Source of the DNA: Chlorokybus atmophyticus
Taxonomy: Eukaryota; Plantae; Mesostigma and Chlorokybus algae
NCBI GenBank assembly: GCA_009103225.1
Contig: RHPI01000777.1
Span: 124,001-188,000, forward strand
Direction: 5' to 3'
DNA length: 64,000 nt
Both the position numbers and the translations under genes were made by a program. Shown piece by piece: positions 73 to 25,062 of this stretch. The notes beneath the pieces are model-generated. The model was given only the letters and a program-made list of their open reading frames with translations. It did not search any database and was not told the DNA's origin. Each line of letters opens with the position of its first letter. Position 1 is the stretch's first letter.

Positions 73-3000
73 CTGTGTCTGTAGGTACAGCGCCGGGTTG
101 TTGAGCACCGTCCCCGCGCCCACGTCCTGTTCGAGGAACGCGTAGGCCATGGTGGGCAGCGCGGTCCAGAGGAGGTTGTACGTCGAGATCAGCGCCGTCG
201 TGTAGAGGGGCTGGCTGGAGAAACCGGAGAACCAGGCGAGGTAGAAGTTGCCGCCGACGTACACCAGGTTCTGCGAGGAGGGGGATGTGACCCAGATGAG
301 CTTCATGCGATAGTGATTGGATGTGCACTCTCGAACGCGCGCGCACGCACACACATGCGTGTGCGTGCGAAATCTCCACAAGCTCGCACACAGACACACC
401 CACGCACGCACGCATGTACACGCACAAACTCACATGCGTGCGCAGGTAGAAAAGCGTACACCCACATGCATGCACACAGGCGCAAGCGCGCGCACACACG
501 GGCGTTCACTCCCACACCCACAACCACACCGTGTACTTGCCTTGTAGAATGCGTACAGCACCAGCTCGCGGTTTCGGCTATAGGACCACCGCCCGTGCAC
601 AAGCAGCAACCGCACCAGAAACCTTTCATTCCAACTTTGTCAGTCACCACCACACACACAACATCACATCCGACATTTGACCCTCTTCTCTCCCCACCTG
701 AACTGTGCCACGGCATAGTCGCTGGCAAGCACCGCCGCCATGCCTTCTCGTCCGCTGATGCCAACCTGCACACGCGCACACGGGTACAGCATCAGTGAGG
801 TTTTGTGGGATGATGACACACAAGACAACATTTGCGTGTGCGTGTCTTGTTGTTTACCCCGATGTGCGCGGCTTTGATCATGCCGACGTCATTCGCGCCG
901 TCGCCCACGCCGAGCGTGACGGCGTGCGCGTGGTCCTTGACCAACTTTGTCACCTGCAGATGTGACGTATTGTTATGGCCTGTTACACGCACTCTGTGTG
1001 TGTGCGTGTGCTGTGGTTGTGTGTCTCTCTCTCTCTCTCCCCGCCATGCCTGTGCTTTTTGCAGTGGCGACACTCTGCAGCACAGCACGGCGTTGCACAT
1101 CATGCATAGTTCCAGGAACAGCAGGGCGTTCTCGGGCTCCAGGGCCCACTCAAGCACCGCACCGTCCACCACAACACCCATCTCCTTCTATACACACAGG
1201 TCCAAGTGAGCCACGCCCCGATCNNNNNNNNNNNNNNNNNNNNNNNNNNNNNNNNNNNNNNNNNNNNNNNNNNNNNNNNNNNNNNNNNNNNNNNNNNNNN
1301 NNNNNNNNNNNNNNNNNNNNNNNNNNNNNNNNNNNNNNNNNNNNNNNNNNNNNNNNNNNNNNNNNNNNNNNNNNNNNNNNNNNNNNNNNNNNNNNNNNNN
1401 NNNNNNNNNNNNNNNNNNNNNNNNNNNNNNNNNNNNNNNNNNNNNNNNNNNNNNNNNNNNNNNNNNNNNNNNNNNCCACGGTATCCCCACACCCACCTTA
1501 GCATCCACTGCTCTTATCCCCCTGGCCTCCTTCGCCATCCCTCCCAGCATCTCCCTCACTCCCTTCCTCGCACTCGCGCACGTCGCCTCTTTCCCCCCCC
1601 CCATCCCTCCTCCTCCTCCTTCAGCAGCCGCCATGACGATGCGCTCGGTGGCTAAGAACAGCTGCATCGAGTCGCGGAGTAGGTTGCAGCTAAGCGCAAT
1701 AGACACCGCCGTCTCGACCTGGACCAGAGAGAGTCGGTGAGTCGGTGAGTCAGTGACTCGGTGAAATCAGTGAGATAACACACCTACCTTATCTCCCGTC
1801 AGCAGCCATATCTTGATCCCCGCCCCCCCCAACGTCCCAATCGCCTCCGGCACCCCTTCCTGCAGCTTGTCCTCCACGGCGGTCGCTCCGACAAGGACCA
1901 GACCCACCTCGACCTCCTCCGCCAGGGAGGCCAGAAGGGAGTCGCGGTCGGAGAGGGCGATGGAGGCCTGGCGGAAACGGAGGGACCAGGAGGAGTACTC
2001 GGACTCGGAGAGCTGTGGAGTGGGGAGATGTGAAGAGCGTTGTTGTTGGATACAAACACATGCGCACACGTGTTTGTGATGCAAACACAAGCGACCGATC
2101 AAAGAAGAAGTCAACCAACGACATGGCCTCAGATATGCACACGCACGCGCAGTATCCGCAAGCAGTTGCAGTCGCAGGCACTTGCACGCGCGTGTGTGTG
2201 TACGCGCCCACACTCACACTTACACTCACACTCACACACATACACATACCCACCCAACCACCCACACACACGTACCTCACGGGCTGCGACGCACAGCGTC
2301 CTGTACCCCGCCCTCGCAAACTTCTCCAGGTGGTTCGTCGTCGCCGTGGCATGGATCTGGTTGGGCGCCAGTCTCGGGTAGATCGCCGTGTCCGCCCCTT
2401 TGCAATACAACCTAACAACAAACACATCTAGCATCAGCATCTCTATATAGCTCCTTGCCTGTGTGATACACTACACTCGCACCTTATTTTGCCTTGTGCG
2501 CCATCGGTGCCTTCTTCGCGCACCACCACGCTCATCCGCTTCCTGTCCGAGTTGAATTCTAACAGAGCGAGGATCTTGGACTTGTAGGACTGGGAGGCCT
2601 CGGCGCACTCCACCACAACCTCGTCGTTGGTGCGAGTCACGAGCCTGAGAGTGTGGGTTTGTGTGTGCGCGTGTGTTTGTGACAGCAACAGCAACAGCAA
2701 CAGCAACAGTTGGTCTTTACTTGAATCCGCATTCGGCTGCGCCTTTGACGAGGGCTTCCTCGTCCGGCGAGGCCGCTTGGTACTTGATGGTGCCGTTGGA
2801 CTCCACCGTTGGCACCACCGTGTGACACGTCGCCAGCACCTGGTCGACGATGTTGGTGTGTTGTGGCACGGGTCATGTGTCTCTCACTGACATACTCGTG
2901 CATCATTGGAAGAGAAAAATCCTAACATGCGGTTCTGCTGTATGCATGTGGGTTTGCGCGGGTCACATACACACTGTGTGTGCAAGAGCGCCAAGTCGAC

Positions 3001-10600: not shown

Positions 10601-13600
10601 GGCGCCATATTCTTCGTGTGGTACGTTATTGCGCACTGACATGCTTTGGTCTTGACTGCATGGGGCCAGATGTGTTAACAGTATGTGAATTGCAGGGCTC
10701 CCATCGTGCTGGTCTATTTTATGGACATGCAAGTGTGGTATGCGATCTTCTCCACGCTTGTCGGCGGCTTCACCGGCCTGTCCTGGCGTTTGGGTGAGAT
10801 CCGCACGATGGGTGTGCTCACGTCGCGGTTCAGGTCCCTTCCCGCAATGTTCTGCAAGAAGCTCTTACCCAAAACGGGTTCGGTGTCGGCTACCGCCATC
10901 GAGCAGGCCCGCGCCGCCGCCAATCCCTACCGCGAGCTCCTCCTTAAGCGCAGGCCGAGCCAGCGCCTCGACCACGTTGGCCCCAACGGCGAGCTCACCG
11001 CGCGGCCCGAGCGGCTCCTATCCGAGGACTCGATGTCGGAAGACGACGTGTCACAAGACAAGAAGTTGGAGCCTTACGTCATGCCGCTCGTGATTGAGCG
11101 AGCTGAGCGCTTTGCGGGCATGTGGAATGAAGTCATGGAGAGCATGCGGGAAGAGGACTTGATCAGCGATGATGAATTGGACAGGCTGTTGATGCCCATT
11201 GGAAACAAGGACATGCCTGTGATACAATGGCCGCTGTTCCTGCTCGCTGGTTACATCCACAGCGCGATGGAGCTCGCTGCGGGGGATCTTGCAAGTGATG
11301 AGGACGTGTGGAATGAAATTGAGCAGCATGACTACCAGCGTGCCGCCGTCATCGAGGCATACGTGACCGCCGAGAGCATGCTCAAGTCTCTCGTGATCGG
11401 TGCAGAGGAGGTTCGCGTTGTGGGACTCATCTTTGAGCACATACAGCACGCCATCAGCCACAAGGACCTGTTCATGGCCTTTGACCTGCAGCAGCTACGC
11501 AGCCTCCACACCAAGGTGGTGGCGCTTGCGGACCTCCTGAGCAAGCCCGCAATGCCGGACAAGCACAACCAGGTGGTGCGTCTCCTACAGAACCTGTACG
11601 ACGCCACCGTGCATGACTTCATGCGCCCCGAGCTGCGCAAGGAGTTTGTGCTCCAGGAGACCAGCGCGGCGGGCTCGCTGTTCCTTGGCACGCCAACGCA
11701 ACCTGTCGTGCGCTACCCGCCTCCCCCCGAGGAGGCCGACAAGTTGATGGCCCAAGCCAAGAGGCTGAAGCTCCTTCTCACACTCAGCAACGCACACCGC
11801 GGGACGCTACACAGCGAGGAAGCCAAGCGACGATTAAAGTTCTTCACCAACTCCATGTTCATGAAGATGCCCAAGGCGCCGCCGACCCGTTCCATGCTGT
11901 CGTTCTGCGTACTCACGCCCTACTACTCAGAGGATGTCGTATACTCCATTGACCAGATCCTGAAAGAGAACATGGACGGCGTTTCCATCCTATACTATTT
12001 GCGCACGGTAAGTGCACTTGCAGTGCTGGCATGTACCTGTTAGTTTGACTATGTGCTGGTGTAATGTGCATCTTGCGCTTGGGATGCAGATATACCCTGA
12101 TGAGTGGGAGAACTTTCTCAAGAGGATGCGCATGACCGAAGAGGAGGTGTGGAAGTTCAACGACGGCATGGAGCTGCGGTTGTGGGCTTCATACAGAGGC
12201 CAGACACTGGCAAGGACAGTCCGCGGCATGATGTATTACCAGAAGGCCATACAACTGCAGGTACACATTAACAATGCGTCTTACTTGTGTTTAGTAGCTC
12301 CCAACAAGCTGATACTCAATGCCTCAATCTGCAGGCCTTCTTTGATCACGCCTCGGCTGATGTGTTCCGGGAAGGCTTCAAGAAAGCCATGTCGCAGCGA
12401 AGCGGCCCCGCGCGTCACGTACGCAATTGGGCCAACGCAATCGCCCACCTGAAGTTCACGTACGTGGTCTCGTGCCAGATCTACGGCAAGCAAAAGAAGT
12501 CCAACGACCAGCGCGCTGCCGACATCTCCGAGTTGATGAAACGGTACGAGTCCCTCCGCGTGGCGTACATCGATGAGGTCGAGGTCCCCGCCGATCCAGA
12601 ACCGGGTGAGACGGCAGCCAACAACGCAGGGATCAAAATGCGAACGGACTACTACTCCGTCCTCATGAAGTACTACCAGGGTCGCGAGCAGGAAGTCTAT
12701 CGCATCAAGCTTCCCGGCAAAGCCAAGCTTGGTGAAGGCAAACCGGAGAACCAAAACCACAGCATCGTGTTCACGCGCGGGGAGGCAATGCAGGTATGGC
12801 AGCAAAGTTGTTCTGCTTACACCTGAGACTCAATGATGCTTGTGTGGGGTCTCGTTGCTCAAGTGTTGTTCACTGCAGGCCATTGACATGAATCAAGACC
12901 ACTACCTGGAAGAGGCTTTCAAGATGCGCAACTTGCTGCAAGAACTTGAACAGGGTGAGTCTAGCTCTACGGGAGAGAAGCGCTTCCCCAACATTCTTGG
13001 TGTGAGGGAACACATCTTCACGGGATCCGTGTCCTCGCTCGCCCACTTTATGAGTCTCCAGGTAAGTTCACGCTGATGTTGTTGTTGTTGTTGTTGCGGT
13101 TGGCAATGAAGCACTGGAGACTTACTTACTTCTGACGTGCTTTGTGATTGTGCACAGGAAACGAGTTTTGTCACTATTGGTCAGCGTGTCATGGCCAACC
13201 CGCTGCGCGTGCGCATGCATTATGGCCACCCCGACGTGTTCGACCGTGTGTGGACTCTCACTCGCGGAGGCATGAGCAAAGCCTCTCGTGTGATCAATCT
13301 CAGCGAGGACATCTTTGCGGGCTTCAACTCTACGCTGCGTGGCGGTCTCGTGACGCACCATGAGTACATCCAGTGCGGGAAGGGCCGCGATGTGGGCCTG
13401 AACCAGATTACCAACTTTGAGGCGAAGGTGTCCTCCGGCAATGGTGAGCAGGTATTGACGCGAGACGTGTTTCGTATCTCACGCAACACGGACTTCTTCC
13501 GCATGCTGTCCTTCTACCACACCAGCGTGGGCTTCTACGTCAACAACATCATCGTGGTGTTGGCCGTGTACATCTACCTTTACGGCAGGATGTGGATATC

Positions 13601-14993
13601 GCTCAGCGGCATAGAAGAACAGATTGTTCACATCAGTCCCGCCCTCAACGCCGCCCTCAACGGCGTGTGGATTTTGCAAGTCGGGTTGCTTACGTCTTTG
13701 CCTATGATCGTCGAGTTGGGCATCGAGGTCGGTTTTAGGAAAGCCCTGCTAGACATACTGCAGATGCAGCTGCAGCTTGCGTGGGTGTTCTTCACGCTTG
13801 GCATTGGGACAAAGGCCCACTACTTTGGCCGCACCCTCACGCACGGCGGGGCCAAGTACCGACCCACCGGCCGCGGGTTTGTCGTGCAGCATGAGACTTT
13901 TGCAGAGAACTACCGCATGTACTCGCGCAGCCATTTCACCAAAGCCATCGAGATGCTGCTCATGCTCATCCTCTATGCCATCTTTGGCTTCACTGAAGGA
14001 AAGTACGGCTTGTTGACGTTTGCCATATGGATTCTTGTTGTTGCGTGGCTCTTTGGACCCTTCCTTCTCAACCCTTCGGGCCTTGACTGGCAAAAGTAAG
14101 TGCGTGGGGCTTATATATCCTGTGCGTGTACTTCATAGAGTGCAAGACACAGGTGATTAATCTTTGTTCTTTCTTTGTGGCAGAACCGTGGACGATTACA
14201 AGGACTTTGTTGCTTGGCTGAGTCACAAGGGTGGGTATGGTGTTGCCGCAACCGCGAGCTGGGAGTCATGGTGGGATGAAGAACAGGTTAGTGCATACTC
14301 AATACCAGCGCCATGATGACTGTTTATTGTTGGCCTGTAACTTGGTGTAATTTAATGCTCACATGATGTTAGTGTGGCTGACACGGGTAACTTGTTTTGC
14401 AGGACTACTTCTTCTACACGGGCTGGCGGGGACGCTTGTTTGAGGTGATCCTAAGCTTGCGCTTCTTCGTGTTCCAGTTTGGCATCGCGTACACGCTAAG
14501 CACGGCGCGCACAACGTCGATCGGCATCTATATCGCCTCCTGGATCATGGTGGCAGCGATCCTCATCTCCGTGAAGGTGGTCAACATCTTCCACGCCAAG
14601 TATGGCGGCACGTCAGAGTTCCTCTTCCGTCTGGTGAAGGCCTTCATCTTCTTCGCGGTGGTGGCGGCCGTGATCGCTCTCCTCGCCACGGGGGTGATCA
14701 CCTTTGGCAACATCGGCCACGTGCTCCTCGCCCTCGCTCCAACATTCTGGGGTGTCGTCCTCATTGGCGTGGCCCTCAGGCCATGGATGGAGCGCTTCGG
14801 CGTGTTCAGCGTCATACGCAGCATTGCGCAGGCATATGACACGATTATCGGACTATCAATCCTCCTTTGCATCGCCGTCGTGGCGTGGTTCCCATTCTTT
14901 GGGGAGATGCAGACGCGGCTGCTATTCAACCAAGCCTTCAGCCGAGGCCTGCAGATATCAAGAATCCTGGCTGGCAAGAAGAAGGTGGCTTGA
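7618..14993 (+). CDS. CALS: Callose synthase (1,3-beta-glucan synthase, GT48) with N-terminal Vta1/MIT-like domain; 13 exons
   Basis: Approximate exons: 7618-7890, 8228-8392, 8612-9639, 9745-9998, 10079-10371, 10508-10620, 10696-12007, 12090-12260, 12335-12792, 12879-13061, 13158-14096, 14184-14285, 14403-14993, all GT-AG. Motifs: DPHSRGRQVLQFKTELLQQLE, FGFQSDNVRNQREN, IWGEAANLRFVPECLCYI, NYDDINEFFW, EAKRRLKFFTNS, LTPYYSEDV, LWASYRGQTLARTVRGMMYY, GEGKPENQNH, IDMNQD, REHIFTGSVSSLA, RMHYGHPD, SEDIFAG, QCGKGRDVG, QTRLLFNQAFSRGLQISRILAG. Confidence 0.97.
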
Positions 14994-16237: not shown

Positions 16238-19200
16238 CTACTCAATGGCTGCTTCCGGCACAAACCAACCATGGAAGCCATATGGTACGCGCTGCGGGAG
16301 CACAATGCGTGCAACAGGCGCCTCCTCAAACCTCTTCGCATCAATGATGTGCACCTCACTCACTCCTCTCTTCTCATCATGAGCATAGCACACAAGGTAA
16401 CCATCATCTTCCTCCTTCGCTCCTTTGCACTCAACAAACACGGCCTCGGTAGCATACATCCCATCCGCCATGTTGTGTCGGAGTATTGTTGGAGTTTGTG
16501 AAAGCCCATCCGGGCCAAAGTCATACTTGACGAGAGCCTTATTGACCCCAACACCTCTGTTCTCAAGTGCTTTTTTCAGGTCACTCTCAGTGATGTAACC
16601 ATAGCGATGCTTCTTCCCAATGTAACTATCGTTGATCCTGGGGAAGTCGCCCACAACCAACTCCTCACCAGGGAGTGTGAAGTAAGCCTCTTCCACCTCA
16701 CCTGATGACAAGTTGATGCGCCACTCGTACATGCGGGAGATGTTTTGTTTGGCAAAGTTCTCCCCGTCGGGACTTAGCCAAGATTCAAGCCAAGGCTGCA
16801 GGTCTTCCTTCTTGGGAGCGACCAAGTCAATTTGCTCAGCGCGACAACCGCGCAAGATCAACGTGTCCCCATGCTCGAAGGCGTTGAGACCATGAAACAT
16901 GTAGCAGGTGTTCACCTCATACCACCTGCTCAGCATAATAATCAGCGCCACACACACACACATACACACACACACAACCACACAGCTGAACACAGCCACG
17001 CACACGGACAGCGACAGGCAAACATGCATGCCTAGAGACATGTACACGCACATGCACACACGCGCACCCACACAGCAACACACGCACTCTAACTCTAGCC
17101 CTTCTTGCATTGCCAACCCACCTGATATCCTTGTTTGTCCCGTATCGCGGCACCACGCCGATTCTTGCCTTGCGATCCTTCTCAAATTGGATGAACCCGC
17201 CGTCGAACATCTTCTCCGGGCGGATGGTGAGGGGGAAGTCCAGCAGCACCGTGTACTGCGCCGTGATAAAGCAGTCGTGCATCAGCGTGGGCACTGGCAC
17301 GTCAATCGGCGCGCTATGCACCAAGTCACCTGCCATGTGACACACACGTGTTGAGTGACATTATTTGGACCATACACCCGCACTATGTACAACCCAACAT
17401 ACCTGTTGCGGAGAGAACGCCGATGTTGACGAAAGGTGGTGTTGTGCGGCCACCCGCGCCGAAGAACACGAGCTCATTTGTGTCTGGGTCCATCTGTCCA
17501 ACACGTGACGCATGCATGAGACCGCAAGTGGTGTTGCTACTGTTTCGTGGTGAGTGCCTAAAGCACACCTTTGGGTGGGCGGTGAATGGGAAGTCAAGCT
17601 TGCCGTTGAAGGTCTGCTCGCCGACAGTGCTGAGGTCTTCCAGCCTCAACTCGGTTGGTGGTGAACCCTCGTGCAGGGCAAACAACCGGCCTGTACACCC
17701 ACATGCACACATGTCACTCTCCGTGTGTGTATGCCTGTGTGCGCGCGTGTGCTTCTGCACGTGTATGTGCATGTATGCGCTTGCATTGACCCATGTACGC
17801 GCATGTGTGCGTGCGTATGTGCATCCATGTCTGTGTCACTGTCAGTGTCAGCACACTGCTACAAGTCCTGTGACACAACAAGAGCAGCATACACCATGCA
17901 GGTGAGAGGCAGCTTGCGATGCTGCTCTTGTTGTGTCACAGAACTTGTAGCAGTGTGCTGACACTGACAGTGACACAGACATGGATGTCGCAAGCTGCCT
18001 CTCACCTGCATGGTGTATTACGCTCGTGTTCGCAGTGTTCTTGTTGACTGAGCCAATGCGCAGCTGGTTGAGCGCGGCATTAAGAATGAGAGCCAGCGGG
18101 TCGGCGTCCACCACTCCTCTCGTGAGGCGCTTCCCTGCCTTGATCTCCTTCTTCAGAGCCTCCGTCATGACATACCTGTATGAGGGTCACCATAGCGTGT
18201 GTCAGCAATGCAACAACAATGCAAGCGTGTATGCTGATCATGTAGTCATGCACATTAATACATGTCGACATAAATAAGTATACATGCATAAACAGATATA
18301 CACGTACATAACCTCTTGTCATTTGTCAGGAACATGTAGTTGAGGCATTGACACATGTACATGTGCGAATGCCCACATGCACATATGCAGTGGATGTATG
18401 TTTTGACATCAACATGCACACTCGCACCCATGTCGTCCTGTGTCTTGCAGGGTTGTGACATGGATTGACACACAGACAACTGGACATGACCATGGTCGTA
18501 CACACACATCAAACCAACCTGTTCTGGTATGAAGCTCTCCCGCCCCTGACCGACGTCTTATGCAGCATCCCATCGCCTTCAAACCAGTGGTGCGCCGTCT
18601 TCCCCAGGACAGGCAACTCGCTTTGGAGGGGCTCATACATAGGGTTGGGTCCATTGCGCAAGAACGACCCGTTTGGAAAATCCGCCGGGATCTGACCTAT
18701 TGTATAGTGCATATTGTATAATGTTGTGAGTTGTGTTGGGAACCCCGAAAGACCAGCTCACCGGCACACTGTAATGTACTCATTCATCTCTGACCTATCA
18801 CTGGGAGATTGTTGGCTGAGAGCTCCCTTGAAACGGGGCCGAAGTTGCCAGCCAGCACGGGGTTCTCGTGGTGGGGGTCTTGCGTTGGGGTGGGGGGTGG
18901 GATTAGGGTGCCGGGCTCAGCTACGCTACCACTTGTGGGAGCTTGAATTGCGACTACACCTTGTGGCCTCTTCCTTATGCTGCTACGATGAATTGTTATT
19001 GTGGAATGCACTGATGTACGAGTTACAGTGAGTTGTGGTGTGGCGTGAAGTGTACCTGTAGGCGCGTGATGAGATGTGCACTCGCAAATCTGCGTAGTGT
19101 GCTTTGCTGCTGAGTGAGTCTGCAGAACTGATGTTATAGGATATGCAGCGAGGTTTACCTCAAAAACAGCAGCGTGTAAGGCTAAGTTGAGGCAAACCAG

Positions 19201-19882
19201 GGTTAAACATGCAGAAGTTATCAAAGCAGCAAAACACGTGGCACGAGTTCTAGTTAATCTCACCTGTACTTTTGCTTTGTGAGCGTACAGCATTTGTTGT
19301 AGATACTGAGGCCAAGCCGCTGACGATGCTGTGACAAGCAGACAGATAAGAACCGAAATGAGGAGAGTGTTTTGCATAGGAACGCGCGCGATGCCATAGC
19401 CATTATGCCATGCATACACCATCGTCAAGCTTTGTAACACGCATGTGCCATCAAGTGGTCACTTGCGCGCAAGCTGCTAAACTTTTGCTTTTAAAATGAA
19501 GTGAAGCGCCTGTGCATTGACCACAAAAACTCGCAACTGACGGACAAAACAAAAGTAACAACCATGACCAGTGAGGGACTGAACACGCTAGACACAAGCA
19601 AAGAAGGCTGCAGACATAGCGCCAGCTCTTACCCGCTGACAACCGGCGCACAGCAGCGCACAGCCTGCGCGGCCATGACTCACTGCAACAAGTTGTTGCC
19701 GATGACCGCCCCTCAGACACTCGTACACTCACACCTGCTTGAAAGACGCCCGCAAGGAGGTGATGAATGTGTCGTACGTGGTGTCGTGGCGGGCGCGGGG
19801 CCACGCTGGCACGATGAGAGGCGTCCCCCGGATTCAAGTCGACCGTCGACGCACCTATGGGCGGAACCTGTCCAGCGAGCAT
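16238..19882 (-). CDS. CCD: Carotenoid cleavage dioxygenase (RPE65 family, CCD1/CCD4/NCED-like) with a long Ser/Thr/Pro-rich N-terminal extension
   Basis: Approximate exons: 19882-19736, 19056-18793, 18697-18520, 18177-18006, 17690-17569, 17492-17402, 17330-17122, 16926-16238. Motifs: NPVLAGNFGPV, GSFLRNGPNP, HHWFEGDGMLH, NTANTSVIHHAGRLFALHEG, and four Fe-ligand His contexts (FTAHPK, LMHDCFIT, YMFHGLNA, VPYGFHGWF). The start codon is tentative. Confidence 0.93.
17823..18016. repeat. Interlocked inverted repeats (68-bp pair plus 28-bp pair) spanning a CCD exon/intron junction
   Basis: 17823-17890 and 17919-17986 are reverse complements with one mismatch. The spacer 17891-17918 is the exact reverse complement of 17989-18016. 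Confidence 0.95.
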
Positions 19883-22094: not shown

Positions 22095-24714
22095 TCATTG
22101 AAGGGTTAGCAAAGCCCCACCATGAGCACTGAAAACCAAAGCAGTGAGAGAACCAGGGCCGAAGCGGTAAAGATGTCTGCCAGCACCCTTATACCGTCCG
22201 CGTGTGGACACAGCACTTAAGTACCCCCGAAGCATCTCTTTGCAGTTGGTAAGATTCCTTTCGGGCTCCCACGTGTTGTGCTCAACACCATACCCTTTCC
22301 ATTTCACCAAGTAAGACGGCGCGCGTCCGCGTCGAGGCTTACGGTGACTCAGGATTGCTTCCACCTCATACTAAAAAGTATCTTCGCCATCCACTGCAAC
22401 GGGGGGTGGAGGAGGTTGAACTCGATCGTCAGAACGGTGCGGTTTCAGTACACTCACATGAAACACATTGTGAATGCGTATCAACTTCGGTAAGTTCAAA
22501 CGATACGCGTGAGTGCCGACCCGATCAGTCACTTTGAAAGGGCCTATCCACCGAGGGAAAAACTTGCGGGTACCCACTCCCTCGACGGATATGTTTTTGG
22601 TACCAAAAAGCACCAAACAACCCACATATGTATCGACTTCGGTAAGTTCAAACGATGCGCGTGAGTGCCGACCCGATTAGTCACTTTGGAAGGGCATATC
22701 TAACGAGGGAAAAACTTGCGGGTACCTACTCCCTTGACGGATATGTTGTTAGTACTCAGAAGCACCAAACAACCCACATCGTAGTTGGCCTCTCTACGAT
22801 GCGCATCAGCTTGGGCTTTTTGTCTGTCCTGCGCTGCGCGCAAACAGTCCTTTGCCAACGCTAACCTATCCTGCATGGCCGAAGCCATCTTGCGCGCTGC
22901 AGGTACGTGAGTAATATCCGTAGCGGGCAACTTGGTATTCGTAGAACTTTGTGGATGCACTCCGTAATCTTAAACAAAAGCGGAGTTTCCTGCACACTCT
23001 CTTGCCATGCATTTTTAATCGCGAACTTAACCATTGGAAGATGTACATCCCAACCACTCTGGTTCGGACTGACATAATGTCGGATGGTTTCCTCGAACAC
23101 TTGATTGGCGCGTTCAGTCTAACCATCCGTCTGCGGATGATAAGATGTGCTCACGTTTTGTTGATTTTGTAGGAAGCTGCATAGCGACTTCCAAAACTGA
23201 GCCACAAATTGCGGATTGCGATCAGACATAAAGTTGTGGGGCAAGCAATGCAACTTGAATACAGACGCATCAAAAACCATCGCTAACTCACGGGAGCCTA
23301 TTTCCGTATGACAAGGGACAATGTGAACCATTTTTATTGAACGGTCCATAAATTGCAGCCGATGTGCGACCTAATGCTGTTTTTAGGAGCTCAGTAATCA
23401 GGAACATCCATACTCACACTTTCCCATTTGCCATCAGGAACAGGCAATGGTCGCAGCAACCCAGCGGGTTTCTGACATAATGGCTTGTCACGTTGACGTT
23501 TGTCACATGTGTCGACATAATGCTGTATGTCAACAGGCAACGATGGCCACCAATACAACTATTGCGCTGCCTTGACAGTCTTGCAATTGCCAAAGTGCCC
23601 AGCGTACGGTGGATCGTGTACATCAGCTATGCATTTCGTACGCAACTCGGCATGGTTGGGTATCACCAAGCTGGTGCCCACGTAATACAAATTGTCTCGT
23701 TTGTCAAGCTTTAGCACGCTCTGAAGACCATAGGTTTGAAGCATACCCGTGCACAACAGCTTGCACACATTCATCGTTTGGAGACAATGTACCGCGCGTC
23801 GCAAGCAATTGCGCACGCATAACTGCCAACAACGACGGACAGCGACTCAGAGCATTAGCAACATTGGTTTTACATGGCCGGTATACCCACTCAAAAGTAA
23901 ACCGGGATAGAAACTTATTCCAGCGAGCTTGCCTACGTGACAAGCTTTGCTGTGTCGAGAAGTACACCAATGGATTCTGATCAGTCACCACTGTGAACTG
24001 AACCCCCTCCAAGTAACATCGCCGTGTTTTCAGAGCCTGTACCATGCCAAGGAACTCTTCTTCAATGGTAGTGTAGTTCACCTCTGCTGGGGATGAACTT
24101 CCTACTCTCATAAGCACATGGTTTGCCATCTTGCAACAGTACTGCACCACACCCAAGAGTGGACGCATTGCTAACCACAATGAAGTGCCTGTCCCAGTTC
24201 GGCAATGCTAACACTGGAGCCAAAGTCAAAGATCGCTTCATCTGTTGCATAGCAGCTTCTTGTTCGGATGTCCACAAGAATGGAGCGTCTTTTGGCAACA
24301 ATTTTGTTCAAGGCACCAGAACCGGTAAATACCCCATCATAAACCTACAAAATTAGTTTGCCAATCCCAAGAATAATCGCAGGTGATGTATATTCTTGAG
24401 TTAAGGCCAATCTTTTACGACTTGCACCTTGCGAGGGTCAGGTTTAACACCCGCACCGCTCATAATGTGCCTCAAGAATGGCAACTCCGTTTTGCAAAAG
24501 TTACACTTTGCAAGATTGGCAAACAAGCGATGTGTACGCAGTAAGGCAAACACCGCTTCTTAGTGCTGCTATGCTCTTTCTCTGTTTTACTGAAGACAAT
24601 AATATCATCCAAGTAATCCATCACATACTTGCCAAGTATGTTACTAAAAACCTCGTTCATTTCCTTCTGAAACACTGCGGGCGCATTCGACAGTTCAATG
24701 ACCAATGCGATCAC
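22095..24714 (-). pseudogene. Degenerate gypsy pol (RT, RNase H, integrase, chromodomain) with many stops and frameshifts
   Basis: LSNAPAVFQ and YLDDIIVFS (about 24604-24615); WDRHFIVVSNASTLGCGAVLLQDGKPCAYES; EEEFLGMVQALK and YRPCKTNVANALSR (RNase H); HDPPYAGHFG (integrase Zn finger); SDRNPQF...STSYHPQTDG (core); EAILSHR...[21 protein letters not shown] (chromodomain, 22364-22220). Confidence 0.93.
22478..22781. repeat. Diverged tandem duplication (about 152-bp unit) inside the integrase C-terminal region
   Basis: GTATC(A/G)ACTTCGGTAAGTTCAAACGAT begins at 22478 and 22630; both copies encode ..NISV.GVGTRKFFPR on the minus strand. Confidence 0.9.
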
Positions 24715-25062
24715 GCCGCCGCCAGGGGCAATGCCGGAGCAAAAGCTCCCCTGGCTATGGCGGCCGCTGCGTTAGCAGTGCCGCCATACAGCAAATATCG
24801 ACACGAGACTCATGTCTCGTGTCGATATCAGTGTTATAGAGTAACACTACATTAGGGCCGTAACAGTAGGTTAACGGCCCTAATGTATAGATGTGGTGGA
24901 CGATGGACAGCCACAGACATGTATTAGGGCCGTAACACTAGGTTAACGGCCCTAATACGGCTTAATTGGCTGTATAAACCCGTTGGGACCGTCCCAACGG
25001 GTGACCCTTGTTTATTCCTAAATGAGAACAAGGAACCTCTATAGAGGTAGCACTCCGTTACA
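24712..25062 (-). repeat. 5' LTR remnant fused directly to the middle of RT, containing four perfect hairpins
   Basis: Matches the 3' LTR from 21819 onward. The LTR end, PBS, gag, protease and RT N-terminus are absent. Stems are at 24795-24828, 24848-24887, 24921-24958 and 24978-25002. Confidence 0.88.

Follow-up and report, generated by a model that had tools for sequence, protein, structure and literature searches.

The locus examined here, an intron of a carotenoid cleavage dioxygenase (CCD) gene in Chlorokybus atmophyticus, contains an antisense copy of its own 5' splice site within the loop of a long hairpin, and the question that it raises is whether such an arrangement is a regulatory device or the trace of a mutation. 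The stretch of DNA analysed, referred to below as the window, is 64 kb long, and all coordinates are positions within it.

Identification of the host gene was based on domain and homology searches. Three minus-strand exons match the Pfam family PF03055 (RPE65), with E-values of 8e-49, 2e-15 and 3e-16, and the last exon, used as a query in HMMER, retrieved a 604-aa protein with 100% identity (EukProt EP00898, JGI Chrsp141S02175). Four iron-binding histidine motifs, AHPK, HDCF, FHGLNAFE and GFHGWF, are present in this protein. The extension of PF03055 across the fold, together with the four motifs, points to membership in the RPE65/CCD family, and since all four family motifs are readable in Chrsp141S02175, the gene looks intact. 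The annotated protein joins ...ANTSVIHHAG directly to RLFALHEG, and the intron therefore corresponds to positions 18005-17691. The gene and its relevant parts are as follows:

16241 to 19676, minus strand: host gene, a carotenoid cleavage dioxygenase of the RPE65 family; Chlorokybus atmophyticus model Chrsp141S02175, 604 aa, placed by tblastn.

18006 to 18177, minus strand: exon ending in ...ANTSVIHHA-G, matching residues 179-236 of Chrsp141S02175 at 100% identity (tblastn); its last 13 nt lie inside the exact B repeat described below.

17691 to 18005, minus strand: intron of 315 nt, phase 1, GTGAG...ACAG, delimited from the sequence and the annotated protein; 217 nt without the insert.

In the annotated gene model, a spliced one and the only one on record, this intron is simply removed. 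Its insert-free length of 217 nt falls within the range of about 70-334 nt found for the other introns of the CCD gene, and the splice signals, comprising the first 18 nt of the intron, the branch region and the acceptor, are intact despite the insert. An additional acceptor-like site was noticed in the minus-strand interval 17846-17890, where the arm A' begins with a pyrimidine-rich run ending in CACAG/G at 17868; its distance from the donor changes from about 41 nt to 138 nt through the insert, and its use would bring a stop codon six codons later. Among neighbouring genes, exons of a 1,3-beta-glucan (callose-type) synthase (PF02364, E = 4e-110) are located on the plus strand at 13137-14993, convergent on the 3' end of the CCD gene. 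On the minus strand at 22095-23100, a chromodomain ORF (PF00385) stands beside repeated integrase-like ORF pieces, and these ORFs are probably the remains of a chromovirus-type retrotransposon.

The sequence-only reading of this DNA had described four blocks in the order B-A-B'-A' on the minus strand, and this order was recovered at the same positions by reading of the sequence and by inverted-repeat and pattern searches:

17988 to 18018, minus strand: B, the 31-nt exact repeat copy with the 5' splice site (donor between 18006 and 18005), taken as ancestral; exact inverted-repeat scan and pattern search.

17919 to 17987, minus strand: A, a 69-nt arm regarded as the inserted copy; 99% complementary in the repeat search.

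17891 to 17918, minus strand: B', the antisense copy of the donor region and loop of the A:A' hairpin; repeat and pattern searches.

17822 to 17890, minus strand: A', a 69-nt arm, the putative ancestral intron sequence and template, its ancestry being assigned by parsimony.

The 28-nt core of B (18016-17989) consists of the last 11 nt of the exon and the first 17 nt of the intron. Its inverted match to B' had been given as exact over 28 nt; the match is indeed exact, but our own exact-match scan extends it to 31 nt (18018-17988 against 17919-17889), so that 1 and 2 nt of it are shared with the A arms. The arms likewise differ at a single position, as had been reported, but are 69 rather than 68 nt long. 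The only difference between them, at 17942/17867, places U opposite G in the minus-strand RNA, and because this single mismatch is a G.U pair, the A:A' RNA stem is paired throughout. The repeat search also returned a hairpin loop that coincides exactly with the 28 nt of B'. Each A:A' pair crosses each B:B' pair, making the two helices mutually exclusive in a nested model, as had been pointed out. None of 100 dinucleotide shuffles gave two matches, either for the A repeat or for the B repeat, and the region folds with a z-score of -13.7 relative to shuffles. A pattern search found no further copy of either repeat in the 64-kb window.

This anatomy is probably the young mutational scar of a one-step inverted insertion, and not an evolved device. 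B is considered the original and B' the copy, because B includes conserved coding sequence. The order B-A-B'-A' is of the form X1-X2'-X1'-X2, which results from the insertion of a reverse-complement copy inside its own template, and the near-identity of the copies indicates that the event is recent. The segment that would have been added in this way is the following:

17890 to 17987, minus strand: putative 98-nt insertion, made up of arm A, B' and one A nucleotide; the reverse complement of the ancestral position 18017 followed by B and A' (T+B+A').

When compared with the reverse complement of this contiguous stretch, the insert is identical at 97 of 98 positions and contains no untemplated base. 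The insertion point lies 30 nt within the 98-nt template, and the resulting repeats are 31 nt and 69 nt long. In the ancestral intron, A' would have come immediately after the donor region B. While the DNA was being replicated or a break repaired, the growing strand would have halted 18 nt into the intron, switched to the same-sense strand about 70 nt downstream and copied backward through A' and B, reaching 12-13 nt into the exon before returning to the point that it had left. The outcome of such an event would be a 98-nt reverse-complement copy within its own template, with two interleaved inverted repeats. At the DNA level, an origin in break repair, as a templated inverted insertion, is an alternative to an origin in replication. 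In the classification of template switches this corresponds to type 3-1-4-2, which "creates two inverted repeats" and accounts for 1% of human-chimp events (Löytynoja & Goldman 2017, PMC5453318). Two observations fit the one-step model less well: junction microhomology is absent at the first switch and amounts to 1 nt at the return, which offers little to microhomology-driven models, and 98 nt is long for this class.

Inverted repeats are not confined to the CCD intron. Seven loci in the 64-kb window have perfect inverted repeats of 13 nt or more with both copies within 150 nt, compared with 0.15 expected under a second-order Markov model, and this excess fits a recurrent process in the Chlorokybus genome. 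At 50545-50616, the arms of a perfect 22-nt inverted repeat are separated by a 15-nt spacer that repeats, in direct orientation, the initial 15 nt of the arm. This interleaved set of direct and inverted copies could fold into either of two hairpins and looks like another template-switch product. Three short perfect hairpins occur within 165 nt at 24795-24958, and two of them share the arm core TTAGGGCCGT, with arms of 13-14 nt and loops of 12 nt, and lie 73 nt apart. A 28-nt inverted repeat at 56178-56383 (86%, with 18 nt exact) has a 150-nt spacer that includes a second small hairpin.

Since the structure is known from one assembly, its reality in the genome has to be considered. This Chlorokybus assembly was produced from Illumina and BGI-seq reads only, using SOAPdenovo with k=85, GapCloser and Pilon (PMC7027972), and the 98-nt insert could in principle be absent from the genome, having arisen from chimeric molecules in the library or in the course of short-read assembly or gap closing. 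The reliance on short reads and on gap closing with GapCloser favours this explanation, as do six gaps of N in the window (1224-1475, 39159-39196, 40704-40838, 43958, 45329-45637 and 58544-58617), the window being part of a scaffolded short-read assembly. Protein search, exact look-ups and the 90% cluster likewise revealed no independent assembly. However, the nearest of the gaps is more than 16 kb away, and since neither repeat (31 and 69 nt) reaches k=85, mis-traversal of the assembly graph cannot produce the junctions and reads must contain them. The difference between the arms at 17942/17867 would also be surprising had a single stretch been used for both, and the layout conforms to a clean class of biological event. 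An assembly artefact is thus considered unlikely.

The same searches did not provide an insertion-free allele, as neither an outgroup nor a second strain was found among proteins, clusters or metagenomes. Neither the last-exon ORF nor the annotated protein was on record in exact look-ups, and the 90% cluster of the annotated CCD protein has a single member. Metagenome contigs scanned for exact B gave 0 matches, and a scan of metagenomes for related loci yielded only relatives that are at most 41% identical. A word search with residues 150-330 of the CCD protein gave 51% identity for the best non-self match. The protein collection contains no close CCD ortholog, the nearest relatives being 40-51% identical; the named ones are mostly cyanobacterial, with Klebsormidium at 47%.

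A further possibility concerns the fate of the hairpin, which could have been born from the insertion as a small-RNA precursor (a proto-miRNA or hairpin siRNA locus) processed by an algal Dicer-like enzyme. The pre-mRNA would form a 69-bp stem, of 68 Watson-Crick pairs and one G.U pair, with a 28-nt loop, Chlorokybus has algal-type DCL and AGO genes (PMC7994812), and new miRNA hairpins have been described as arising by template switching (PMC10710096). Against such a role, the arms are purely intronic and B' spans just 11-13 nt of the exon, leaving no evident target in mature mRNA, and the proposal is regarded as quite unlikely. The best match to the Rfam miRNA models reached 53 bits, where the gathering score is 98 bits, and both strands were matched equally; these matches were rejected as reflecting structure only, as for any long perfect hairpin.

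The sequence-only reading had also considered a neutral, recent origin by a double template switch, on the grounds that the block order is not that of a simple inverted duplication. The neutral and recent template switch is favoured by the present evidence, but a double event is needless, as one switch and return with a contiguous 98-nt template suffices if A' is ancestral. Two separate switches, with B-A ancestral and B' and then A' copied in turn, would gain some credit from the fact that which arm is older cannot be told from the sequence alone. They would, however, require two independently templated segments with borders matching the B/A border to the base, as well as a third jump back, whereas the one-step model covers the same sequence with one contiguous template. 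An origin by two switches is accordingly very unlikely, and a single inverted insertion is retained as the preferred explanation.

Whether the inserted sequence affects splicing was approached by folding the minus-strand transcript at growing lengths and by calculating how nine donor positions pair at equilibrium when the 98 nt are present or removed. From a transcript end at 17905-17889 to one at about 17855 (about 50 nt of transcription), the minimum-energy fold is the full 31-bp B:B' helix over the donor, and it flips to A:A' once about 40 nt of A' have emerged. The helix energies are -137.5 kcal/mol for A:A' and -61.4 kcal/mol for B:B'. In a growing transcript there would be a brief window in which the 31-bp helix covers the donor before the more stable 69-bp hairpin becomes favoured. 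Because all pairs cross, B:B' must melt fully before any A:A' pair can form, barring pseudoknotted intermediates, and owing to this requirement naked RNA could be kinetically trapped. As modelled, this kinetic picture is physically reasonable. At equilibrium, the nine donor positions have the same pairing probabilities whether or not the insert is present. We expect that the insert is tolerated and that any loss of splicing efficiency is modest at most. When the ORF that continues through the donor and into the repeats was used as a protein query, no match was obtained.

A stronger claim would be that one mutation created a bistable pre-mRNA, in which the 5' splice site is caught in the 31-bp helix before the 69-bp hairpin forms, so that splicing is measurably impaired or dependent on elongation speed. 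This is conceivable, if doubtful. If true, it would represent natural and datable raw material, supplied by template switching at a donor, from which a structure-based splicing switch or a hairpin small-RNA locus could develop, and the CCD case may be one among several in Chlorokybus.

The kinetic splicing switch suggested by the sequence-only reading survives in one respect, since B:B' can precede A:A' in the folds of the growing transcript. Two other results do not favour it: equilibrium accessibility of the donor is unchanged, and the annotated model splices the intron out. A switch maintained by selection would imply that B:B' hides the donor from U1, that A:A' or a helicase frees it, and that CCD splicing is thereby tuned by elongation speed or temperature. 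The predicted succession of the two helices and the possible trapping of naked RNA, where all 31 pairs would have to open first in the nested model, are in line with such a switch, and donor-sequestering stems are known to attenuate splicing, an example being the 5' splice site of murine leukemia virus (PMC2794156). Several features argue against it. The copies differ at 1 of 98 positions, which leaves no time for selection and, the copies being too alike, no observable covariation. The loop of the B:B' helix is 68 nt long, and the donor is transcribed about 70-100 nt ahead of B'. Eperon et al. (1988) reportedly observed that long-looped hairpins cease to influence splicing in vivo, since the site has by then been occupied by factors. 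The equality of equilibrium accessibility with and without the insert weighs in the same direction, as does the recurrence of this event class in the Chlorokybus genome, tested at the level of the window, which fits mutation better than design. A selected switch is therefore highly improbable.

Long terminal inverted repeats around a short loop would also suit a foldback element, here a transposon or MITE inserted beside the donor with 69-nt repeats at its ends. This reading is ruled out within the window, because the 64 kb contain no other copy of A or B and the flanks no target-site duplication, and the loop is an exact antisense copy of the adjacent host exon-intron junction.

The CCD insert is thus best regarded as the product of a known but rare mutation class, and a regulatory function as a switch is unsupported. 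If real, it represents an unusually large and clean case of the rarest observed class of template switch, located across the splice donor of a conserved enzyme gene. It also illustrates that a single copying error can make two competing RNA helices together, and Chlorokybus could be useful for studying how template-switch errors feed new RNA structures.

Comparison with known systems helps to delimit the case. As with the donor-sequestering stem of murine leukemia virus (PMC2794156), the 5' splice site of the CCD intron could, in the predicted folds, sit in a stable helix that would compete with U1. Those stems, however, are conserved, have short loops and were demonstrated by experiment, whereas the CCD helix is predicted to be favoured only transiently, has a 68-nt loop and faces a much stronger competing hairpin. 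With the RNA hairpins and new miRNA genes attributed to template switching (PMC8794818, PMC10710096) it shares the production of a long, perfectly paired RNA stem by one copying error; it differs in being a predicted, intronic and very young structure. At double-strand breaks, the templated inverted insertions that have been reported mostly measure about 5-34 bp and copy one side of the break (PMC11724301). Foldback or polymerase-theta-type repair of this kind resembles the CCD event in that a reverse-complement copy of flanking sequence is inserted with little or no microhomology, although the CCD insert is 98 nt long and would have been copied from both sides of the insertion point.

The closest counterpart is the type 3-1-4-2 template switch (PMC5453318), in which a single reverse-complement copy, made from a template spanning both the leaving and the return points, gives rise to two inverted repeats, and in which, as in every type observed, the return point comes after the leaving point. 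The CCD event differs in that the replaced spacer has zero length, so that it is a pure insertion, in that its copy of 98 nt exceeds the few tens of bases of the published events, and in that it spans a splice donor and is known from the derived allele alone. Judged from the sequence, the CCD insert nevertheless has two defining properties of this type, namely one contiguous nearby template and a template that spans both points.
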